From NCBI GenBank assembly GCA_965112735.1, contig OZ218950.1, forward strand, positions 496,001 to 560,000: 64,000 nt of DNA, given 5' to 3'. The translations under genes and the position numbers were made by a program. This document shows positions 18,201-62,600 of the stretch, in pieces (position 1 is the first letter of the stretch; every line of letters starts with the position of its first letter). Below the pieces are notes generated by a model. It was not told the origin of the DNA, searched no databases, and worked only from the letters and a program-made list of their open reading frames with translations. The stretch is from Phaeosaccion multiseriatum (taxonomy: Eukaryota; Protista; Ochrophyta, other classes).

Positions 18201-21200
18201 GGAGCAGCGAGACAGAGAGGAGGGGTTAGCGGCGGAGAGTGTGTTCTTTGTCCTCATGCAGAGGCTGCGCTACCACCTCTTGGTGGAGGGCTGCCGAGTG
18301 GTGACTACTACCACTGCTGTATCACCAACTGCTGGTGCTGGTGGTACAAGGAAGAAGAGGCCCAAGAAGCCCTTTGGCGTGGGGGTGCATGTGTTTCGTC
18401 GTGCGGGCCATCAGGCCAGCGACGGCTCCTACGGATTGCACGGGGCAGAGTGGGTAAAGTTCCTGAAGGAGTGTCCAGGGGTCATCGATCCTGCCAGCGG
18501 GGGTAGGAGAGCGCTGGGCGCTGGCAGCGGAAAGTGTATGGGTAAGGCTGGTCAGAGTCAGCAGCATGCTGGGGCGACGGAGAAGGAGACGGAGAAGGAG
18601 AAGGGGAAGCAGCAGCTGCAGCAGAGGCAAGAGCAAGGGGCGCACGGGGAACAGGGGGCAAGCAAGGGGAGCAAGGCCAGCAAGGGTCAGGGTCGGGCGG
18701 TGACACTCAGTGTCGTGGATGCAGATCTCATCTTCGCACAGCTGAACAAGGACACAGATGACAACCACAAGACCAACAAGAAGAGAACCAACACGCTAAG
18801 CTTTGAGCAGTTCCTCGCTGCCCTGGACATTGTCACGGCGACGCTCTTCCCCTTGGTGAAGCGATGGAAGGGCCTCAAAGACGTTCGTGCGAAGGACGCT
18901 CGGCTGCTGCATCTGTTTGAAGAGCTGGTGCTGGAGAGCCCCTGGGGGAAGGAGAGCAGGGTCTACCAGATGGTAAGCGGTTATTAGGATGCAGTGGCTG
19001 GGTAGGTAGGTGGGTGGGCGGTGCTTGTTCATTCATTTGTGTGTGCGTGTGTGTGTATTGGCGTGCCTATGTGCGTGCGTGCGTGCGTCCGCTTTCGCGT
19101 GTGCGTGTGTCAGGGAAGGGGAGGGGGGGAGAGCACATTTCCGCACACACGTGCACACACGCACCCGCACACGCACACGCACCCGCATATGCACACACAC
19201 CTGCACACAAGGAGGCATGCACGAAGCGCAAATGAGACACTTTCGCCACCATTCCGTTCTCCTCCTGAGAGCGCCGCTCTCTGCCTTTGGAGCGCCCGCC
19301 TCATTCCTCTCCCTCCTATCCCCTCTCCCCTCTCCCCTCTCCCCTCTCCCCTCCCCTCCCCCCTCTCCCTACCCGTCAGGAATCGCTCTCTCGGCACGCC
19401 AAAGCCCTCGTCACCCGTCTCCAATGCGTGGTCCGAGCCCACTTCGCCCGTCAAACCGCCCGACAAGCTCGCGCCCTGGCCATCAACGCCGCTTGGGCTG
19501 AGTGGGAGGGGTATGCCGCTCTCACTATCCAGTGCCTAGTGCGACGAGTCCAAGCGAGAGACAGGGTGGAGATGCTGGCTCGAGAGGCGTATCAGAAGTT
19601 TACCGACCCGGAAACCGGCCGTCCTTACTGGTGCAGTCCGACAGGGGGTTTAGTGACTTGGGAGAAGCCGTTGCTGCTCGGGAGAGGGGACGTGGCCTAT
19701 GCGTTGACGGTGGTGGACAAGCTCAGCGAGTTTGTTGTTCGGTGTAGGTGAGTGAGTGAGTGAGTGAGTGTGTGTGTGTGTGTGTGGGTGGGTGGGGAGG
19801 GATGGCAGTGGATGAGGAGGGATGGCAGTGGATAGGAAAGGCATGAATGGCAGTGGATGGGAGAGGTATTGACAGCAGTGGATGGGAAAGGCAGGGAATG
19901 AGCGCAACGTGACTAAAGACTATCCTCCTCCTCCTCCTCCTCCTCCAGCAACTGCGAGGTGGCCCCATGCGCTGTCCTGTGTGAAACGTGCCAAGACTCC
20001 TTCTGCTTAGAGTGCTTCCAAAGCCTCCACCAAAAGGGCCTGAGGAAGGCAACCCACGTCCCCAAGCCCATTCCCATGTGTGTGCATTGCCACTACCAGC
20101 ACGCCACTCGCTACTGCGAAACGTGCCGCAGCGAAGCACCACCGAGCGAATCACCAACATGCGAAGGTCACAGCGAAGCACCAACACCCATAGGAGGAGG
20201 AGGAGGAGGAGGGACAGTGCGAGGTGCTTCGTACTGCGACGTGTGCTTCTTCAACGCCCACCCCGAGGCTCAGCCATCTGTGAAAGAGGCAGATGCAGCG
20301 GCAGCGGTAGGGGGAGGGGGAGGGGCGGAGGGAGGGACGGAGCAGCAGCTCAGCCTCAACAGATTGAAGAAGAAGCGGAGGCCGCATACTACACACCCCT
20401 TGGTGGTGCCGTGCGTAGAGTGCCATTGTCTGGCCGCCAGGTGAGTGGCTGATATCGACATGCTCGATATCCGAAATCTTCGATATATCCATTTGCTCGA
20501 TATTGGCGTGTTCGATACTGATGTGTACAGTATCGAGGTTGGCCAACAGACTGAAACTGCCTAGCAAACTGACACTCTCCCTCTCCCTCTCCTCGCCGCA
20601 ACGCCTCCCCTCCCTCCTCCCCTGCAGATGGCTGTGCGACGAGTGCGAGGATGCGTTCTGCTCTACGTGCTTCATGCGGGTGCACTCTCGGGGCAAGTGG
20701 GCCAAGCACAAAGCCATCAAGCTGGCCTACTACCAGCCGGGCATGTGAGTGGCAGGCAGGCAGGCAGACACGCAGGATGGCAGCAAATGGCAGAAGAGTA
20801 GAGTCAGGCTGGGAAGTGCCCACCGCTGGCCCAACTCTTACGCAATACTTACTGAACATTCGTTCGTACGTTCGGCTACATAGCTAACCTCCCGATTCAA
20901 TCCGATCCGATCCCATCCCATCCGTTGTGATCTGGTCCTATTTCTCTCCTCTCCTCTTCCCTTTCCTCTTTTTAACCGTTATGATTTAAAGGCATATGCA
21001 ATACCGCCTGGATTGCTCGCATCGGAGGCGGGCCGCCTTCGCCGCGGAGGCCTTGCTGAAGCACCAACTGGAGGAGAGGCGTCGACAGTTGGAGGCCACC
21101 CTCACACTGCAGAGCCACTGGAGAGGCTGCATGGGTAGGGCCAAGGGCAAGGTAAGGGAGGGAGGTCATGGGGGCGGGGGTTGGATGGCAGTAGATGGCA

Positions 21201-59602: not shown

Positions 59603-62600
59603 TCATACGTCCCCGAGGGAGGTGCGTGTGGGAGTGGCATACTTCCTCGCTGAGGCAGAGACAGAGCGCGCGCTGAGAAGAATACCACCGCTGCCACCAC
59701 CACCACCAACGCCTCGGGAGAAGGACCGTTCCCTCTCCTTCTCTCTCTGCACTCTCGCCAGATCCAGCTGTAGCCGCTTCACCTCGGCACGCGACTGCGC
59801 CTCATCCCTCACCCGCTGCTCCTGCATCCGTAACGTCTCTGTAAGCTGGCGCCGCATCTCCTCCACCTGTCTCTGAGAGGCCTCCAACCGCCCCGCCACC
59901 TGCCCTGCGTCCTCTCCCCTCGCCGCCGCCATGCAGGCTAGTTGGTTCTTCTCTCCAGCCAGCGTCGCCAACCTGTTCTGCAGATCAACGTTCCTCGCCT
60001 TGTACCGCTGGGCGAGCTCGGCTTCATCCTTGAGACTCCGCTGGGCCTCTGCAAGATCTCTTTGAAGAGAGGCTTTGGCCGTAACGGTGGCTTTGTGGCG
60101 AGAGCTCTCTGCCTCCTGCTGCCGGCGCTCGGCCTCACGCGCCTGTAGTACGGTGAGAGCATGCAGCAGCAGCAGCAGCAGCAGAGTTGGTGAGCTCATC
60201 TGCAGCTTCACACGCACGCAGACGCACACCCCAGTTGACTTTCTACCCAGACACCTTGGCCTCTAGTGCTGTCATCTGCCTCACACGCGCACACACGCAC
60301 ACACACACCCATGGACTTGTACCCACCTTGGTCTCTAGTGCGGTCATCTGCAGTCGGAGGTTCTCAAGCTCAGCGTCCTTGGAGAGGGCAAGGTCTTCCA
60401 TGCCGCTGCTCACCTCGCTCCGGAGCTGCTCCAGAGCCATGCTGTAGGAGGAGGAGAGGGGGGGAGAAGGGGGGGAGAGAAGAGGCAAGGGGTTGGATGG
60501 GGATAGGAGAGGAGAGGAGAGCGAGAGGAGTGGATGGGAGTGGAGAGGGGAGAGTAGAGGAGGAGTTGGGAGAAGGGGAGGGGCGAGACAGCACACGGGG
60601 TGTCAGGACGCGCAAGCCACACCGGGTTTCAGGGGGGACCATGTCAAGAGCGAAGGAGATGATGGGGATGAAGATACGCCTCCTCCTCCTCCTCTTCTTC
60701 TTCTTCTTCTTCTTCTTCTCTTCCTCCTCCTCCTCCTCCTCCATCCTCCTCTTCCACTCACTTCGCCTTGAAGACCTCTCTCTCCTTGGCCTCTGCCCTG
60801 TCAGACGCGCCTCTCAAGGCCGCCCGAACCGCCTCTACCTCCGACTCTCTTGCTTTAAGCATGTTCTCAAGAGCCGACACCTTGGTCTGCCCCTGTGTGT
60901 ACTTGCCCGTCAGCTCGCTCAAGGCTGCTGCGGCTTCTTCTTGCTGCTCTGTGTGGGCCCGGTGGTCCTCTGCTCGCTCTGCCTCGGTGCTGAGGAGTCG
61001 CTTTTGTTGCGTGTCCAGCTGGGCCTTGAGGGATGCTTGTTCTTCTTCGAGGGAGCGTTGCAGCTTGCTCGACACGGTTTCCAGAGACGCCTTGTTATTG
61101 TGGTGATGGTTGTAGTAGTTGTAGTTGAGTAGTAGTAGTGTAGTAGTGTGAGTGAAAGGTGTATACATGTGCATGAGACAAGAGGAGTGGGAGACAAGAG
61201 AGAGGGGGAGTAGGGTGTGAAAGAAACGAAGGACGACACAAAGAGAGAGAGAAACAGATAGAAAGAGAGGGAGAGAGAGAAAGGGAGAGAGAGAGAGAGA
61301 GAAAGGGGCAGAGAGAGGGGGAGAGAAGCAGGGAAGACGGAGGGTGGCGTAGAGCAACACAAGGGGGAGGCAACAGAGGACTGGGTGTCAGGACGTTTGT
61401 TTCCGCCTACACCCGAATCGTCATTGGTCTACGTGTACGTCTCTCGCTCTCCATCTCTCTCTCTCTCTCTCTCTCTCTCTGTAATGTCTCTTTCTCTCTC
61501 TCTCTCTCCATGTCTCCCCCCTCCACCTTCATCTCCCTCACCTTCTCCCGCATGGCCCTATCGAACTCGCCCCTTAACCTCGCATTGTCGGCCACGACTT
61601 CTTTGATCTGCGCCTCGCGGCTGTCCACAGCGGCGTTCATCTTTGCTTGGAGGGCCGACACCGCCTGTAGCACAAGTACGGCAGTTGGTGATACAGCAGC
61701 AGCAGCAGCGGCAGCAAGCGTGGGAGAAGAAGTTAGTGATACGGCGACGGCACAGACGGCACAACAACAAACGACCCAGGCCCGTCAGCGGGGCGAATCT
61801 TCTTGTTCATCGCCCCCGGTTACTTCCCTCCTCTTTCCCATTTCACTCTTTCCCCTCCTTCTCGACTTCAATTCGCTTCCCTTTGCCCCTTTACTTTTGG
61901 TGTGTGGGAGGCTCCCGACCTTTCCTTCGACCCGCGACTTCCATTGCTCTTTCTGTGGCCGTTGTTCCTTCCGTGGCTCACTTGCGAAGGGGCCACACTC
62001 AGCCTCCACATCTCTCTCACTTCCTCCTCCTCCTCCTGCTCCTCCTCCTCCTCCTGCTCCTCCTCATCCTGCTCCTCCTGCTGCTGCTGCTGCTGCTGCT
62101 CTTCTCCTACCCACCTCATCAGTCTCCCTAAGGCGCTCCTCATTGTCGTGCTTCCTTGCTTCGAGCACTCTGCCAAGCTCTCGTCGGGACTGAATCTCCA
62201 ATGCTCGGGCTTGGTCCCTGCGCAGCACAAATACACACACAGCGCTTAGTGAATGGGTAGGGGTAGACAGAGAAAACATACACGGCACGACAGGACACCA
62301 CACGCACGCACTCACATCACGCAGTTCCTCCATACCCCATCCACTGCCATCGTTCCCCCATCAGTCCCCTCCCCTCCCCACCCCCAACCCACTCCCGTCC
62401 CCTCCACTGCCATCCCTCCCTCCGCCCTCTCCCCTCCCCTCACCTTGCCAGCAGGGCGTCCTCCACCTTCTGCTTGGACTCCCTGGTGAGCTGCAAAGTC
62501 GCCTCCTCTCGAGCAGAGTACTCTCCAAGCTGCCTCTCCATACCGCCCATCACCTGAGTAAGAGCGGTACACACACAGCACGTAAGTAAATAAGAAGGTA

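Follow-up and report, generated by a model that had tools for sequence, protein, structure and literature searches.

The 64,000-nt window analyzed here, a stretch of contig OZ218950.1 of Phaeosaccion multiseriatum, contains a finger-protein gene amplified in tandem, and raises the question of whether its broken copies record a contest between host and retroelement. A preliminary description of the locus had proposed such a contest: amplification of exactly one whole gene, with three of four copies then knocked out, might compensate for insertional loss or might diversify a repressor that the element disables by inserting into its DNA-binding repeats. Our analysis favors a different reading, namely that site-specific homing of the element into a large clustered gene family explains the locus, and that the quadruplication happened to include one member of this family. 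We place the probability of this reading at roughly 85%.

A tandem quadruplication with one precise junction

Self-BLAST of the window and inspection of the junction sequences delimited four tandem units with a base length of 8.2-8.4 kb, in agreement with the four ~8.3-kb units and identical junctions of the preliminary description. Unit 1 (18842-30592) runs on at its left edge from an intact IQ/WW/B-box gene and measures 11.75 kb owing to two element insertions. Unit 2 (30593-39002) measures 8.4 kb, while unit 3 (39003-47216; 8.2 kb) is free of element insertions and served as the reference. Unit 4 (47217-59757) contains a full-length element and is missing ~2 kb equivalent to positions 42065-44046 of unit 3; the deletion joint, at ~50173-50178, adjoins a run of CTC repeats. 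The three internal junctions are identical, each joining a sequence that ends in ctctcg to CGCTCATCCCC. Microhomology with the parental flanks amounts to only ~1 nt, and the 'cgc' microhomology suggested previously is not clear.

Both edges of the unit lie where they had been placed. The duplication starts inside an exon-like ORF (18052-18987, plus strand) of a large multi-exon IQ-motif/WW/B-box gene (12279-23155, plus strand; identified from its ORFs and from Pfam matches of the unit 3 copies to WW and to an ANCHR-like B-box), and units 2-4 therefore carry 5'-truncated copies of this gene. It ends at 59757, inside the last coding ORF of a coiled-coil gene (59603-60229, minus strand; placed by ORF and junction sequence), so that a 3' fragment of this ORF closes each unit. 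Across the 67-Mb genome, the non-finger portion of the unit is present only four times, always within the window, and pairwise divergence among the four units is 3.2-3.9%. Every unit also contains an old dispersed repeat (45710-46588 in unit 3; 74-86% identity to over 40 loci spread across many contigs), which is unrelated to the young element. One founding duplication joined the coiled-coil exon to the IQ exon with ~1 nt of microhomology; recurrence of the same junction three times fits later expansion by unequal crossing-over.

If the units were collapsed or mis-joined haplotypes or reads, then the copy number or the insertions would be unreal. The indels between the two long element copies in the window are all 1-nt length changes in two poly-C runs, suggestive of residual homopolymer errors. 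However, four units cannot be two haplotypes, and they differ not only by 3.2-3.9% but also in a 2-kb deletion and in four distinct insertions. They also have in common one precise novel junction, present three times, and similar arrays of the family are assembled at many other places. We therefore regard an assembly artifact as highly improbable.

Three of the four finger genes carry element sequence

A single minus-strand gene with Zf_WRKY19 repeats is present in each unit and is the sole complete gene there, as had been noted. Inclusion of one small intronless gene in an 8.3-kb duplicate is not improbable in itself. The intact copy in unit 3 (44073-45215, minus strand; defined by Pfam and translation) encodes 380 aa from the first ATG, comprising seven Zf_WRKY19 units of 25/27 aa and a 208-aa C-terminal domain. 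Its repeated C-x4-C...C-x2-H units fit the Zf_WRKY19 family model (Pfam PF24906; E=6e-39, 131.9 bits, 7 stretches). The 208-aa domain had no Pfam match at E up to 10 and no match in the Atlas, and these same searches of the finger protein found no KRAB-like or other recognized repressor or effector domain. The proposal that the element disables a repressor was thus not supported.

The preliminary description was also correct in that only the third copy is uninterrupted, since the finger genes of units 1, 2 and 4 all carry element sequence. In unit 1 the gene lies in a C-terminal piece (23754-24489, minus strand) and further pieces at 24823-25219 and 28436-28471 (start codon 28469-28471); all read open, and each break falls directly after ...VEGC(D/N). 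The unit 2 gene (35826-37067, minus strand) is split by a 17-bp element remnant, which separates the finger array from the C-terminal domain by an in-frame TAG. Translation of the unit 4 gene recovered a C-terminal piece (50200-51024, minus strand) and, on the other side of the element, an N-terminal piece (57765-58250). The four copies contain between 7 and 9 finger repeats each.

These interruptions are four insertions of one non-LTR retrotransposon, measuring 17 bp, 333 bp, 3.2 kb and 6.7 kb, all of which are antisense to the finger gene and have the same exact 3' junction. In unit 1, insertion A (24490-24822, plus strand) is a 333-bp 5'-truncated copy with the exact 3' end, flanked by the duplication GTCGCACCCC at 24480-24489 and 24823-24832, while insertion B (~25220-28435, plus strand; 5' edge ambiguous by 2 nt) is a 3.2-kb 5'-truncated copy flanked by GTTACACCCC at 25210-25219 and 28436-28445. 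The unit 2 insertion (36487-36503, plus strand) consists of the last 17 nt of the element only, recognized by an exact 16-mer match, and lies between copies of CTCGCACCCC at 36477-36486 and 36504-36513. The full-length element in unit 4 (~51025-57764, plus strand; ~6.74 kb, 5' edge +/-3 nt) is followed by GTCGCACCCC at 57765-57774 (plus strand), and the 5' copy of its duplication, at 51013-51024, has 2 extra nt. All four 10-bp duplications fall in codons for Glu-Gly-Cys-Asp/Glu/Asn. Since the insertions differ in length, occupy different finger units and have target duplications that match the local variant (GTCGCACCCC, GTTACACCCC or CTCGCACCCC), their sequences mark them as independent events. 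The two long copies, insertion B and the unit 4 element, are 99.7% identical (0.25% different).

The element has R2-like features

The full-length copy begins with a short 5' leader and then, at 51058, has an ATG in Kozak context. Upstream of the reverse transcriptase (RT) lie RING-like fingers (~53118-53670), with a zf-RING_2 match that is borderline in Pfam (27.0 bits versus a cutoff of 27.3). The RT (~55150-55670) passes Pfam RVT_1 with 32.3 bits, above the gathering score of 29.6 (E=1e-7). Next come a CCHC motif plus restriction-like endonuclease (~56750-57250), a stop at 57440 and a 324-nt 3' UTR. The coding parts are spread over three frames in the assembly; one frame change maps to ~56187, inside a poly-C run, and the other two probably lie in such runs as well; either true mutations or assembly errors may account for them. 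Self-BLAST revealed neither LTR nor TIR, and an HDV-like ribozyme or other Rfam family was not found in the element.

Among 5.8 billion proteins, the search recovered only four relatives of the endonuclease ORF, and the resulting 5-sequence alignment of the C-terminal ORF displays conserved H..C, R.D, D..V, E..K and ETYGRLG columns. The structural model made from this alignment, which is of low confidence (mean pLDDT 55), has an alpha-beta-beta-beta-alpha-beta core. It matched all seven R2 cryo-EM entries with Z 11.4-13.3 over 201-271 residues, compared to 7.0 or less for the next structural match, Prp8, and the best 6 Foldseek matches were all R2. In sequence searches against the PDB the R2 match was not significant, and that of the RT to R2 chain 9nl2_A was marginal (E=0.22). 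The model thus predicts that the C-terminus is an R2-like CCHC motif plus PD-(D/E)xK endonuclease. With its RT, C-terminal CCHC/endonuclease, defined target and hallmarks of target-primed reverse transcription, the element fits the site-specific non-LTR retrotransposons that encode a restriction-like endonuclease. It differs from the R2 clade proper in that its target is finger-unit coding sequence rather than the 28S rRNA gene.

The element targets one position of the finger repeat genome-wide

We found 93 exact element 3' ends in the genome, compared to 0 for a control pattern. Sixty-nine of the 93 adjoin the same 10-mer, NTYRCACCCC, where chance would provide ~0.001, although the 69 do not equal independent events, as some copies are surely duplicates of one event, such as those recurring every 4.1 kb at C1:680-689 kb. 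About one quarter of the 3' ends are without the canonical 10-mer. In the C1, C8 and C13 subfamilies, the junctions of 36 other copies revealed this target again, and full-length copies in three subfamilies have it on the 5' side too. The target is the antisense strand of the Glu-Gly-Cys-(Asp/Glu/Asn) codons that recur in every finger unit, and landing sites number 7-9 per finger array and several hundred per genome. Thus, the link between element and finger repeats drawn in the preliminary description is real and highly specific; disabling of a repressor is the part of it that found no support.

A fixed 3' end, 5' truncations, 10-bp target duplications and lack of terminal repeats are hallmarks of target-primed reverse transcription. 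By this route the element would integrate at one position, antisense of the Glu-Gly-Cys-(Asp/Glu/Asn) codons, leaving an exact 3' junction, a 10-bp target duplication and 5' ends that are variably truncated or have a few extra bases.

Age and occupancy argue against a local arms race

The finger family numbers 68-134 genes genome-wide (at least 68), and sits in several tandem clusters with unit structures of 8.3 kb in the window and, at other places on C1, of 5.9 kb and 3.3 kb. The element occupies 30 of 68 genes (~44%), or 27 of 64 (~42%) outside the window. With a family of at least 68 genes occupied at this level, three of four in the window is unremarkable and represents no enrichment (P=0.21). 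In addition, the units are 3.2-3.9% apart while the element copies differ by 0.25%, indicating that the amplification is much older than the insertions, roughly tenfold. Taken together, these findings do not support the idea that the gene was amplified in answer to insertional loss, and the three knock-outs probably represent ordinary family occupancy rather than a locus-specific contest.

In the homing interpretation, a young R2-like retrotransposon inserted four times, in three of the four finger genes, long after the founding duplication; the insertions fell in finger genes because the element is sequence-specific. By analogy to rDNA for R2, the multicopy family may serve as a tolerated landing pad. 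Weighing against this interpretation are the low-confidence endonuclease model, the three-frame coding and the ~1/4 of 3' ends that are noncanonical.

An arms race supposes that finger proteins repress elements in the manner of KRAB-ZNFs, that the element homes into the codons of their DNA-binding repeats, and that the host amplifies and diversifies in return. Consistent with this, several independent tandem arrays of the family differ in unit structure, repeat number varies among the four copies, and the finger unit combines a scaffold that is invariant at C1, C6, C16 and H19 (39-53 units) with hypervariable positions 7, 9, 10, 11, 17 and 18. Furthermore, within the 10-kb portion of the C13 array that was examined, most units have CAA at codon 7, eliminating the used target; occupied C13 units have a GA-type codon. 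However, the target belongs to the invariant scaffold, which any element in need of a conserved multicopy site would be expected to use, and the C-terminal domain matches neither a known repressor nor another family. The intact unit 3 copy retains 7 usable target sites matching the used ones, and hence displays no sign of escape. Occupancy in the window is not above that of the rest of the family, and the order of events at the locus, duplication before insertions, is opposite to that of an arms race, although this timing covers only the present element burst. We consider an arms race quite improbable. Hypervariable positions and clustered amplification nevertheless leave room for a KRAB-ZNF-like role of the family, by analogy.

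Possible sequence exchange within the finger family

In their finger coding DNA, the four units are no more similar to one another (2.3-3.6% different) than to paralogues 60-200 kb away (1.6-3.3%). The flanks of those paralogues can hardly be aligned, whereas the flanks within the window are 3.5% different. This pattern would be expected if endonuclease breaks in finger repeats were repaired from paralogues, homogenizing arrays and changing copy number. The pN/pS of the C-terminal domain, ~0.94, likewise argues that the coding sequences stay similar through homogenization and not through purifying selection, and says little on the dispensability of a copy. On the other hand, the unit junctions lie in other genes, outside the finger repeats and the element, indicating that the quadruplication did not arise at a cleavage site. 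Tandem paralogues can undergo gene conversion without any endonuclease, and the family predates the element burst. Concerted evolution driven by the endonuclease is therefore unlikely. Equally, it is doubtful that family and element co-evolve, with cuts driving conversion and copy number while the host diversifies residues and loses the target, as with CAA in C13. If true, such a pair would represent a real host-element contest inside a protein-coding DNA-binding repeat.

Comparison with known systems

R2 is a non-LTR retrotransposon with a restriction-like endonuclease that is specific for 28S rDNA, where it has been proposed to shape array copy number via breaks and conversion. The element resembles R2 in its predicted order of RT, linker, CCHC motif and C-terminal PD-(D/E)xK endonuclease (fold Z 11-13 in the model), in its exact 3' junction, variable or truncated 5' ends and head-to-tail copies with a common target, and in its use of a conserved site of a multicopy gene. 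Unlike R2, it targets protein-coding DNA rather than rDNA and is antisense to the host gene, which excludes co-transcription with the target. It further differs in having no Rfam match to an HDV-like ribozyme, only marginal RT similarity to R2, RING-like fingers in its N-terminal region rather than a demonstrated ZF plus Myb module, and a target duplication of a regular 10 bp. C-terminal endonuclease, early-branching architecture and sequence-specific integration into repeats are also found in NeSL, CRE/SLACS/CZAR, R4/Dong, Utopia and some HERO elements, but none of these targets a protein-coding repeat.

The finger family is similar to tetrapod KRAB zinc-finger clusters in being tandemly amplified, in varying in repeat number and in combining a fixed finger scaffold with hypervariable positions. 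In contrast to them, its fingers are of the Zf_WRKY19 rather than the C2H2 type, and it is without a recognized KRAB-like or other effector domain. Insertion of the element into the finger genes themselves is likewise not a feature of the KZFP system.

Known targets of non-LTR retrotransposons with sequence specificity comprise rRNA, snRNA, tRNA and spliced-leader genes, other transposons, microsatellites and telomeres (PMC4640811). A full-text literature search found no case of a protein-coding target, and as far as we found such a target is new for this class. The strategy of a safe multicopy site can thus be met by a protein gene family, whose own conservation can turn it into a landing pad. 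Where one element knocks out paralogues repeatedly, target specificity alone can accordingly be the cause, with no need of antagonism, and such cases call for caution. The predicted R2-like protein, whose DNA target of ~10-20 bp is new and well defined, would be a natural comparison for target reading by R2.

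Insertions of one element into the finger genes

Three of the four finger genes in the window, each a Zf_WRKY19-repeat gene lying in one of four tandem units (u1 to u4), are interrupted by a single kind of element, which has inserted four times in total, in each case on the plus strand and thus antisense to the gene. Two of these lie in u1 (24490-24822, 333 bp, and about 25220-28435, 3.2 kb), one in u2 (36487-36503, 17 bp) and one, of full length at about 6.74 kb, in u4 (about 51025-57764). All four share the same 3' end (...AAGCTCTAATATACAT), beyond which the 10 bp that precede the insertion are repeated. 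The duplications (GTCGCACCCC, GTTACACCCC and CTCGCACCCC) each match the local variant of the finger unit; they are therefore true target-site duplications (TSDs) rather than neighbouring repeat units. The insertions occupy different finger units of the arrays. We considered whether a single insertion had been spread by duplication, and rejected this since the lengths and finger units differ and the TSDs are matched to the local variants. The pieces of the finger genes all remain open, with breaks directly after ...V-E-G-C-(D/E/N); in u2 the 17-nt remnant and its duplication keep the frame, but introduce a TAG.

Target specificity across the genome

We searched the GC-rich, 67-Mb genome (22 contigs) for the 16-nt 3' end of the element and found 93 occurrences, compared to none for a reversed control pattern; these counts are minimum values, and among the copies are some that arose by duplication of a single insertion. 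The 10-mer NTYRCACCCC follows 69 of the 93 ends, while its chance rate of one per 65,536 positions predicts ~0.001 in 93 trials. Among 36 junctions read outside the window, about 30 pass into finger units from three subfamilies, named C1 (the contig holding the window), C8 and C13 after their contigs. Several lead directly into another copy, either 5'-truncated or full-length, and such adjoining copies are head-to-tail elements with a common target. The target is also present, plus a few extra bases, on the 5' side of full-length copies in the three subfamilies. It corresponds to the antisense strand of the codons for Glu-Gly-Cys-Asp/Glu/Asn, which belong to the invariant finger scaffold. A stringent 20-nt version occurs 326 times in the genome, and looser matches number 31 in the window.

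The distribution of copies displayed several further features. In ~10 genes of the three subfamilies, the distance from the element 3' end to the finger-gene C-terminal domain is 6.88-7.08 kb, and so a full-length copy sits among the last finger units of that array; this spacing could reflect either a preferred position or the repeated duplication of genes already occupied. Of the element 3' ends on the contigs surveyed, 46 of 88 were without an assigned gene. Copies are densely clustered at 1.51-1.74 Mb of C8, many with no finger-gene C-terminal domain nearby, and this cluster may be a graveyard in which insertions lie nested or in arrays. In a C13 array, of which 10 kb was read (3140000-3149999), most units have Gln (CAA) as codon 7, so that the site reads TTGACACCCC in place of the used TCRCACCCC, while the few occupied units carry a GA-type codon at this position. 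The CAA units could be a target-loss variant.

Coding content, age and affinities of the element

The reverse transcriptase (RT) of the element scored above the Pfam gathering threshold, with a borderline match to a RING-type finger upstream of it. The C-terminal ORF has only four relatives among 5.8 billion proteins, and their alignment conserves an H..C motif and R.D, D..V, E..K and ETYGRLG columns. It matched no Pfam model and only unnamed clusters in the ESM Atlas. Sequence searches of the RT and C-terminal ORFs against the PDB returned nothing significant, and only the comparison of folds was informative. Its AlphaFold model has an alpha-beta-beta-beta-alpha-beta core, but is weak (pLDDT 55). 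The best six PDB matches in Foldseek were all R2 proteins; upon structural re-alignment, all seven R2 entries gave Z scores of 11.4-13.3 (201-271 residues, rmsd 3.7-5.9), followed by Prp8 with Z no greater than 7.0. Although the model is of low confidence, the R2 entries are clearly separated from all other matches, and we assign the ORF as a predicted R2-like endonuclease. An Rfam search of the element revealed neither a ribozyme nor any other family, and its 3' UTR folded no better than shuffled sequences (z = -1.25).

Coding parts of the element are spread over three frames, and the pieces were searched separately as read, with frames neither joined nor repaired. The two long window copies, in u1 and u4, differ by eight substitutions and by two 1-nt poly-C length differences (26701 and 26858 in u1 versus 56031 and 56187 in u4), with no other indels. 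The frame change between RT and endonuclease in the u4 copy coincides with one of these (~56187), and its other two frame changes also appear to lie at poly-C runs. The length differences may be homopolymer errors of the assembly, real frameshifts being the alternative; if they are errors, the calling of frameshifts anywhere in so GC-rich a genome would be affected. Genome-wide, the element copies share 99-100% identity, and the burst was therefore recent.

With respect to known retrotransposons, the element shares with LINEs bearing a restriction-like endonuclease (RLE) an RT, the endonuclease fold, target specificity and hallmarks of target-primed reverse transcription. It belongs to this broad group, and its mechanism, as read from sequence, appears to be that of R2 and other RLE LINEs. 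In contrast, its target differs from that of R2 and the RT similarity is marginal, and we accordingly do not place it within R2 proper. A full-text literature search found no report of a protein-coding target for such elements.

Origin of the tandem units

Self-comparison of the window revealed four head-to-tail units with a basic length of 8.2-8.4 kb: u1 (18842-30592) and u4 (47217-59757), both lengthened by insertions, together with u2 (30593-39002) and u3 (39003-47216). All three internal junctions have the same sequence (...ctctcg|CGCTCATCCCC), as the preliminary description had reported; its cgc microhomology was not clearly seen, with ~1 nt left when the junctions are compared to both parental flanks. 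On the left, the unit begins inside an ORF (18052-18987) belonging to a large gene of the plus strand (12279-23155) that has WW and B-box domains as well as IQ motifs; on the right, it ends inside the final coding ORF (59603-60229, minus strand) of a coiled-coil gene. In the genome as a whole, the initial 2.6 kb of the unit is present only four times, always inside the window, indicating that the quadruplication was local. The identity of the three junctions would be explained by a single initial duplication of non-homologous origin and later unequal crossing-over. Duplication mediated by the element was rejected, as neither element nor finger sequence is present at the unit junctions. Substitution divergence between units is 3.2-3.9% and star-like over ~2.9 kb; the right-end alignment was excluded from these distances because u3 was inflated there (12-13%), probably by a low-complexity CT run.

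Two minor features of the units merit mention. u4 is without ~2 kb, equivalent to 42065-44046 of u3; this deletion (50173-50200) starts 23 bp beyond the stop codon of the finger gene, where the sequence is joined to a run of CTC repeats in the adjacent gene copy, and was probably microsatellite-mediated. In the stretch from the finger gene to the end of the unit, u3 holds an older dispersed repeat (45710-46588), which is also present at the corresponding place in u1, u2 and u4; over 40 loci, spread across most contigs, resemble it at 74-86% identity.

Amplification and insertion as separate events

The preliminary description proposed a possible arms race, in which the element disables finger genes that act as repressors and the host responds by amplifying or diversifying them. 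Hypervariability of finger positions 7, 9, 10, 11, 17 and 18, seen among 39-53 finger units around the invariant scaffold C-x-V-E-G-C...G-G-L-C-x-x-H-G-A-V, would fit this proposal, as would the repeated independent tandem amplifications of the family and the C13 variant. However, the u1 and u4 element copies differ by 0.25%, compared to 3.2-3.9% for the units, and the insertions differ from unit to unit; amplification thus came well before these insertions. Nor is the interruption of three copies out of four exceptional: an element 3' end lies upstream on the opposite strand in 30 of 68 family genes, and occupancy outside the window (27 of 64) does not differ appreciably from that within it (P = 0.21). 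The intact u3 gene shows no sign of escape through loss of its targets, as it retains seven sites identical or nearly identical to used ones, and the finger protein has no recognisable effector domain of the kind expected of a repressor. Taken together, these findings do not support the arms race, which keeps a low probability on account of the features that fit it. Each unit does contain exactly one whole gene, as had been claimed; this is simply the expected outcome, since the 8.3-kb segment surrounds an intronless gene of 1.2 kb whose neighbours are large.

The finger gene family

The single small, apparently intronless gene of each unit lies on the minus strand. That of u3 (44073-45215) encodes 380 aa counted from the first ATG, with seven Zf_WRKY19 units (Pfam PF24906, E = 6e-39) and a 208-aa C-terminal part that matched nothing in Pfam or the ESM Atlas. 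A genome search with this C-terminal domain identified 134 places, at least 68 of them near full length, including 39 on C1 (0.08-0.78 Mb) and further clusters on C8, C13 and C2. Elsewhere on C1, arrays are built of repeat units of different size (5.9 kb and 3.3 kb), in which further ORFs are present; in the 5.9-kb units (C1, 736-746 kb; locus L038, 355-1617 and 6354-7559), a second ORF of ~400 aa lies beside the finger gene.

We compared finger-gene segments of the window (23754-24380, 35826-36452, 44073-44699 and 50200-50826) with loci L037-L040. Distances in finger coding DNA were 2.3-3.6% among the four window copies versus 1.6-3.3% to paralogues 60-200 kb away, whose flanks show only degenerate, barely alignable similarity, and pooled pN/pS in the C-terminal domain was 0.94 (computed without one shifted sequence). 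In combination, these observations suggest that the coding sequences have been homogenised by gene conversion rather than held by strong purifying selection. The pattern is one of concerted evolution confined to the finger coding sequence. Since long BLAST matches to paralogues end at the coding sequence, we also considered a mobile or retroposed cassette, which was rejected because poly(A) is absent and the 3' flanks retain degenerate homology, interrupted by indels. Finally, adjoining fragments of the C-terminal domain of this family lie in opposed orientations (+, -, +) at 9631-10385 of the window (C1, 505631-506385), in keeping with a hairpin there.
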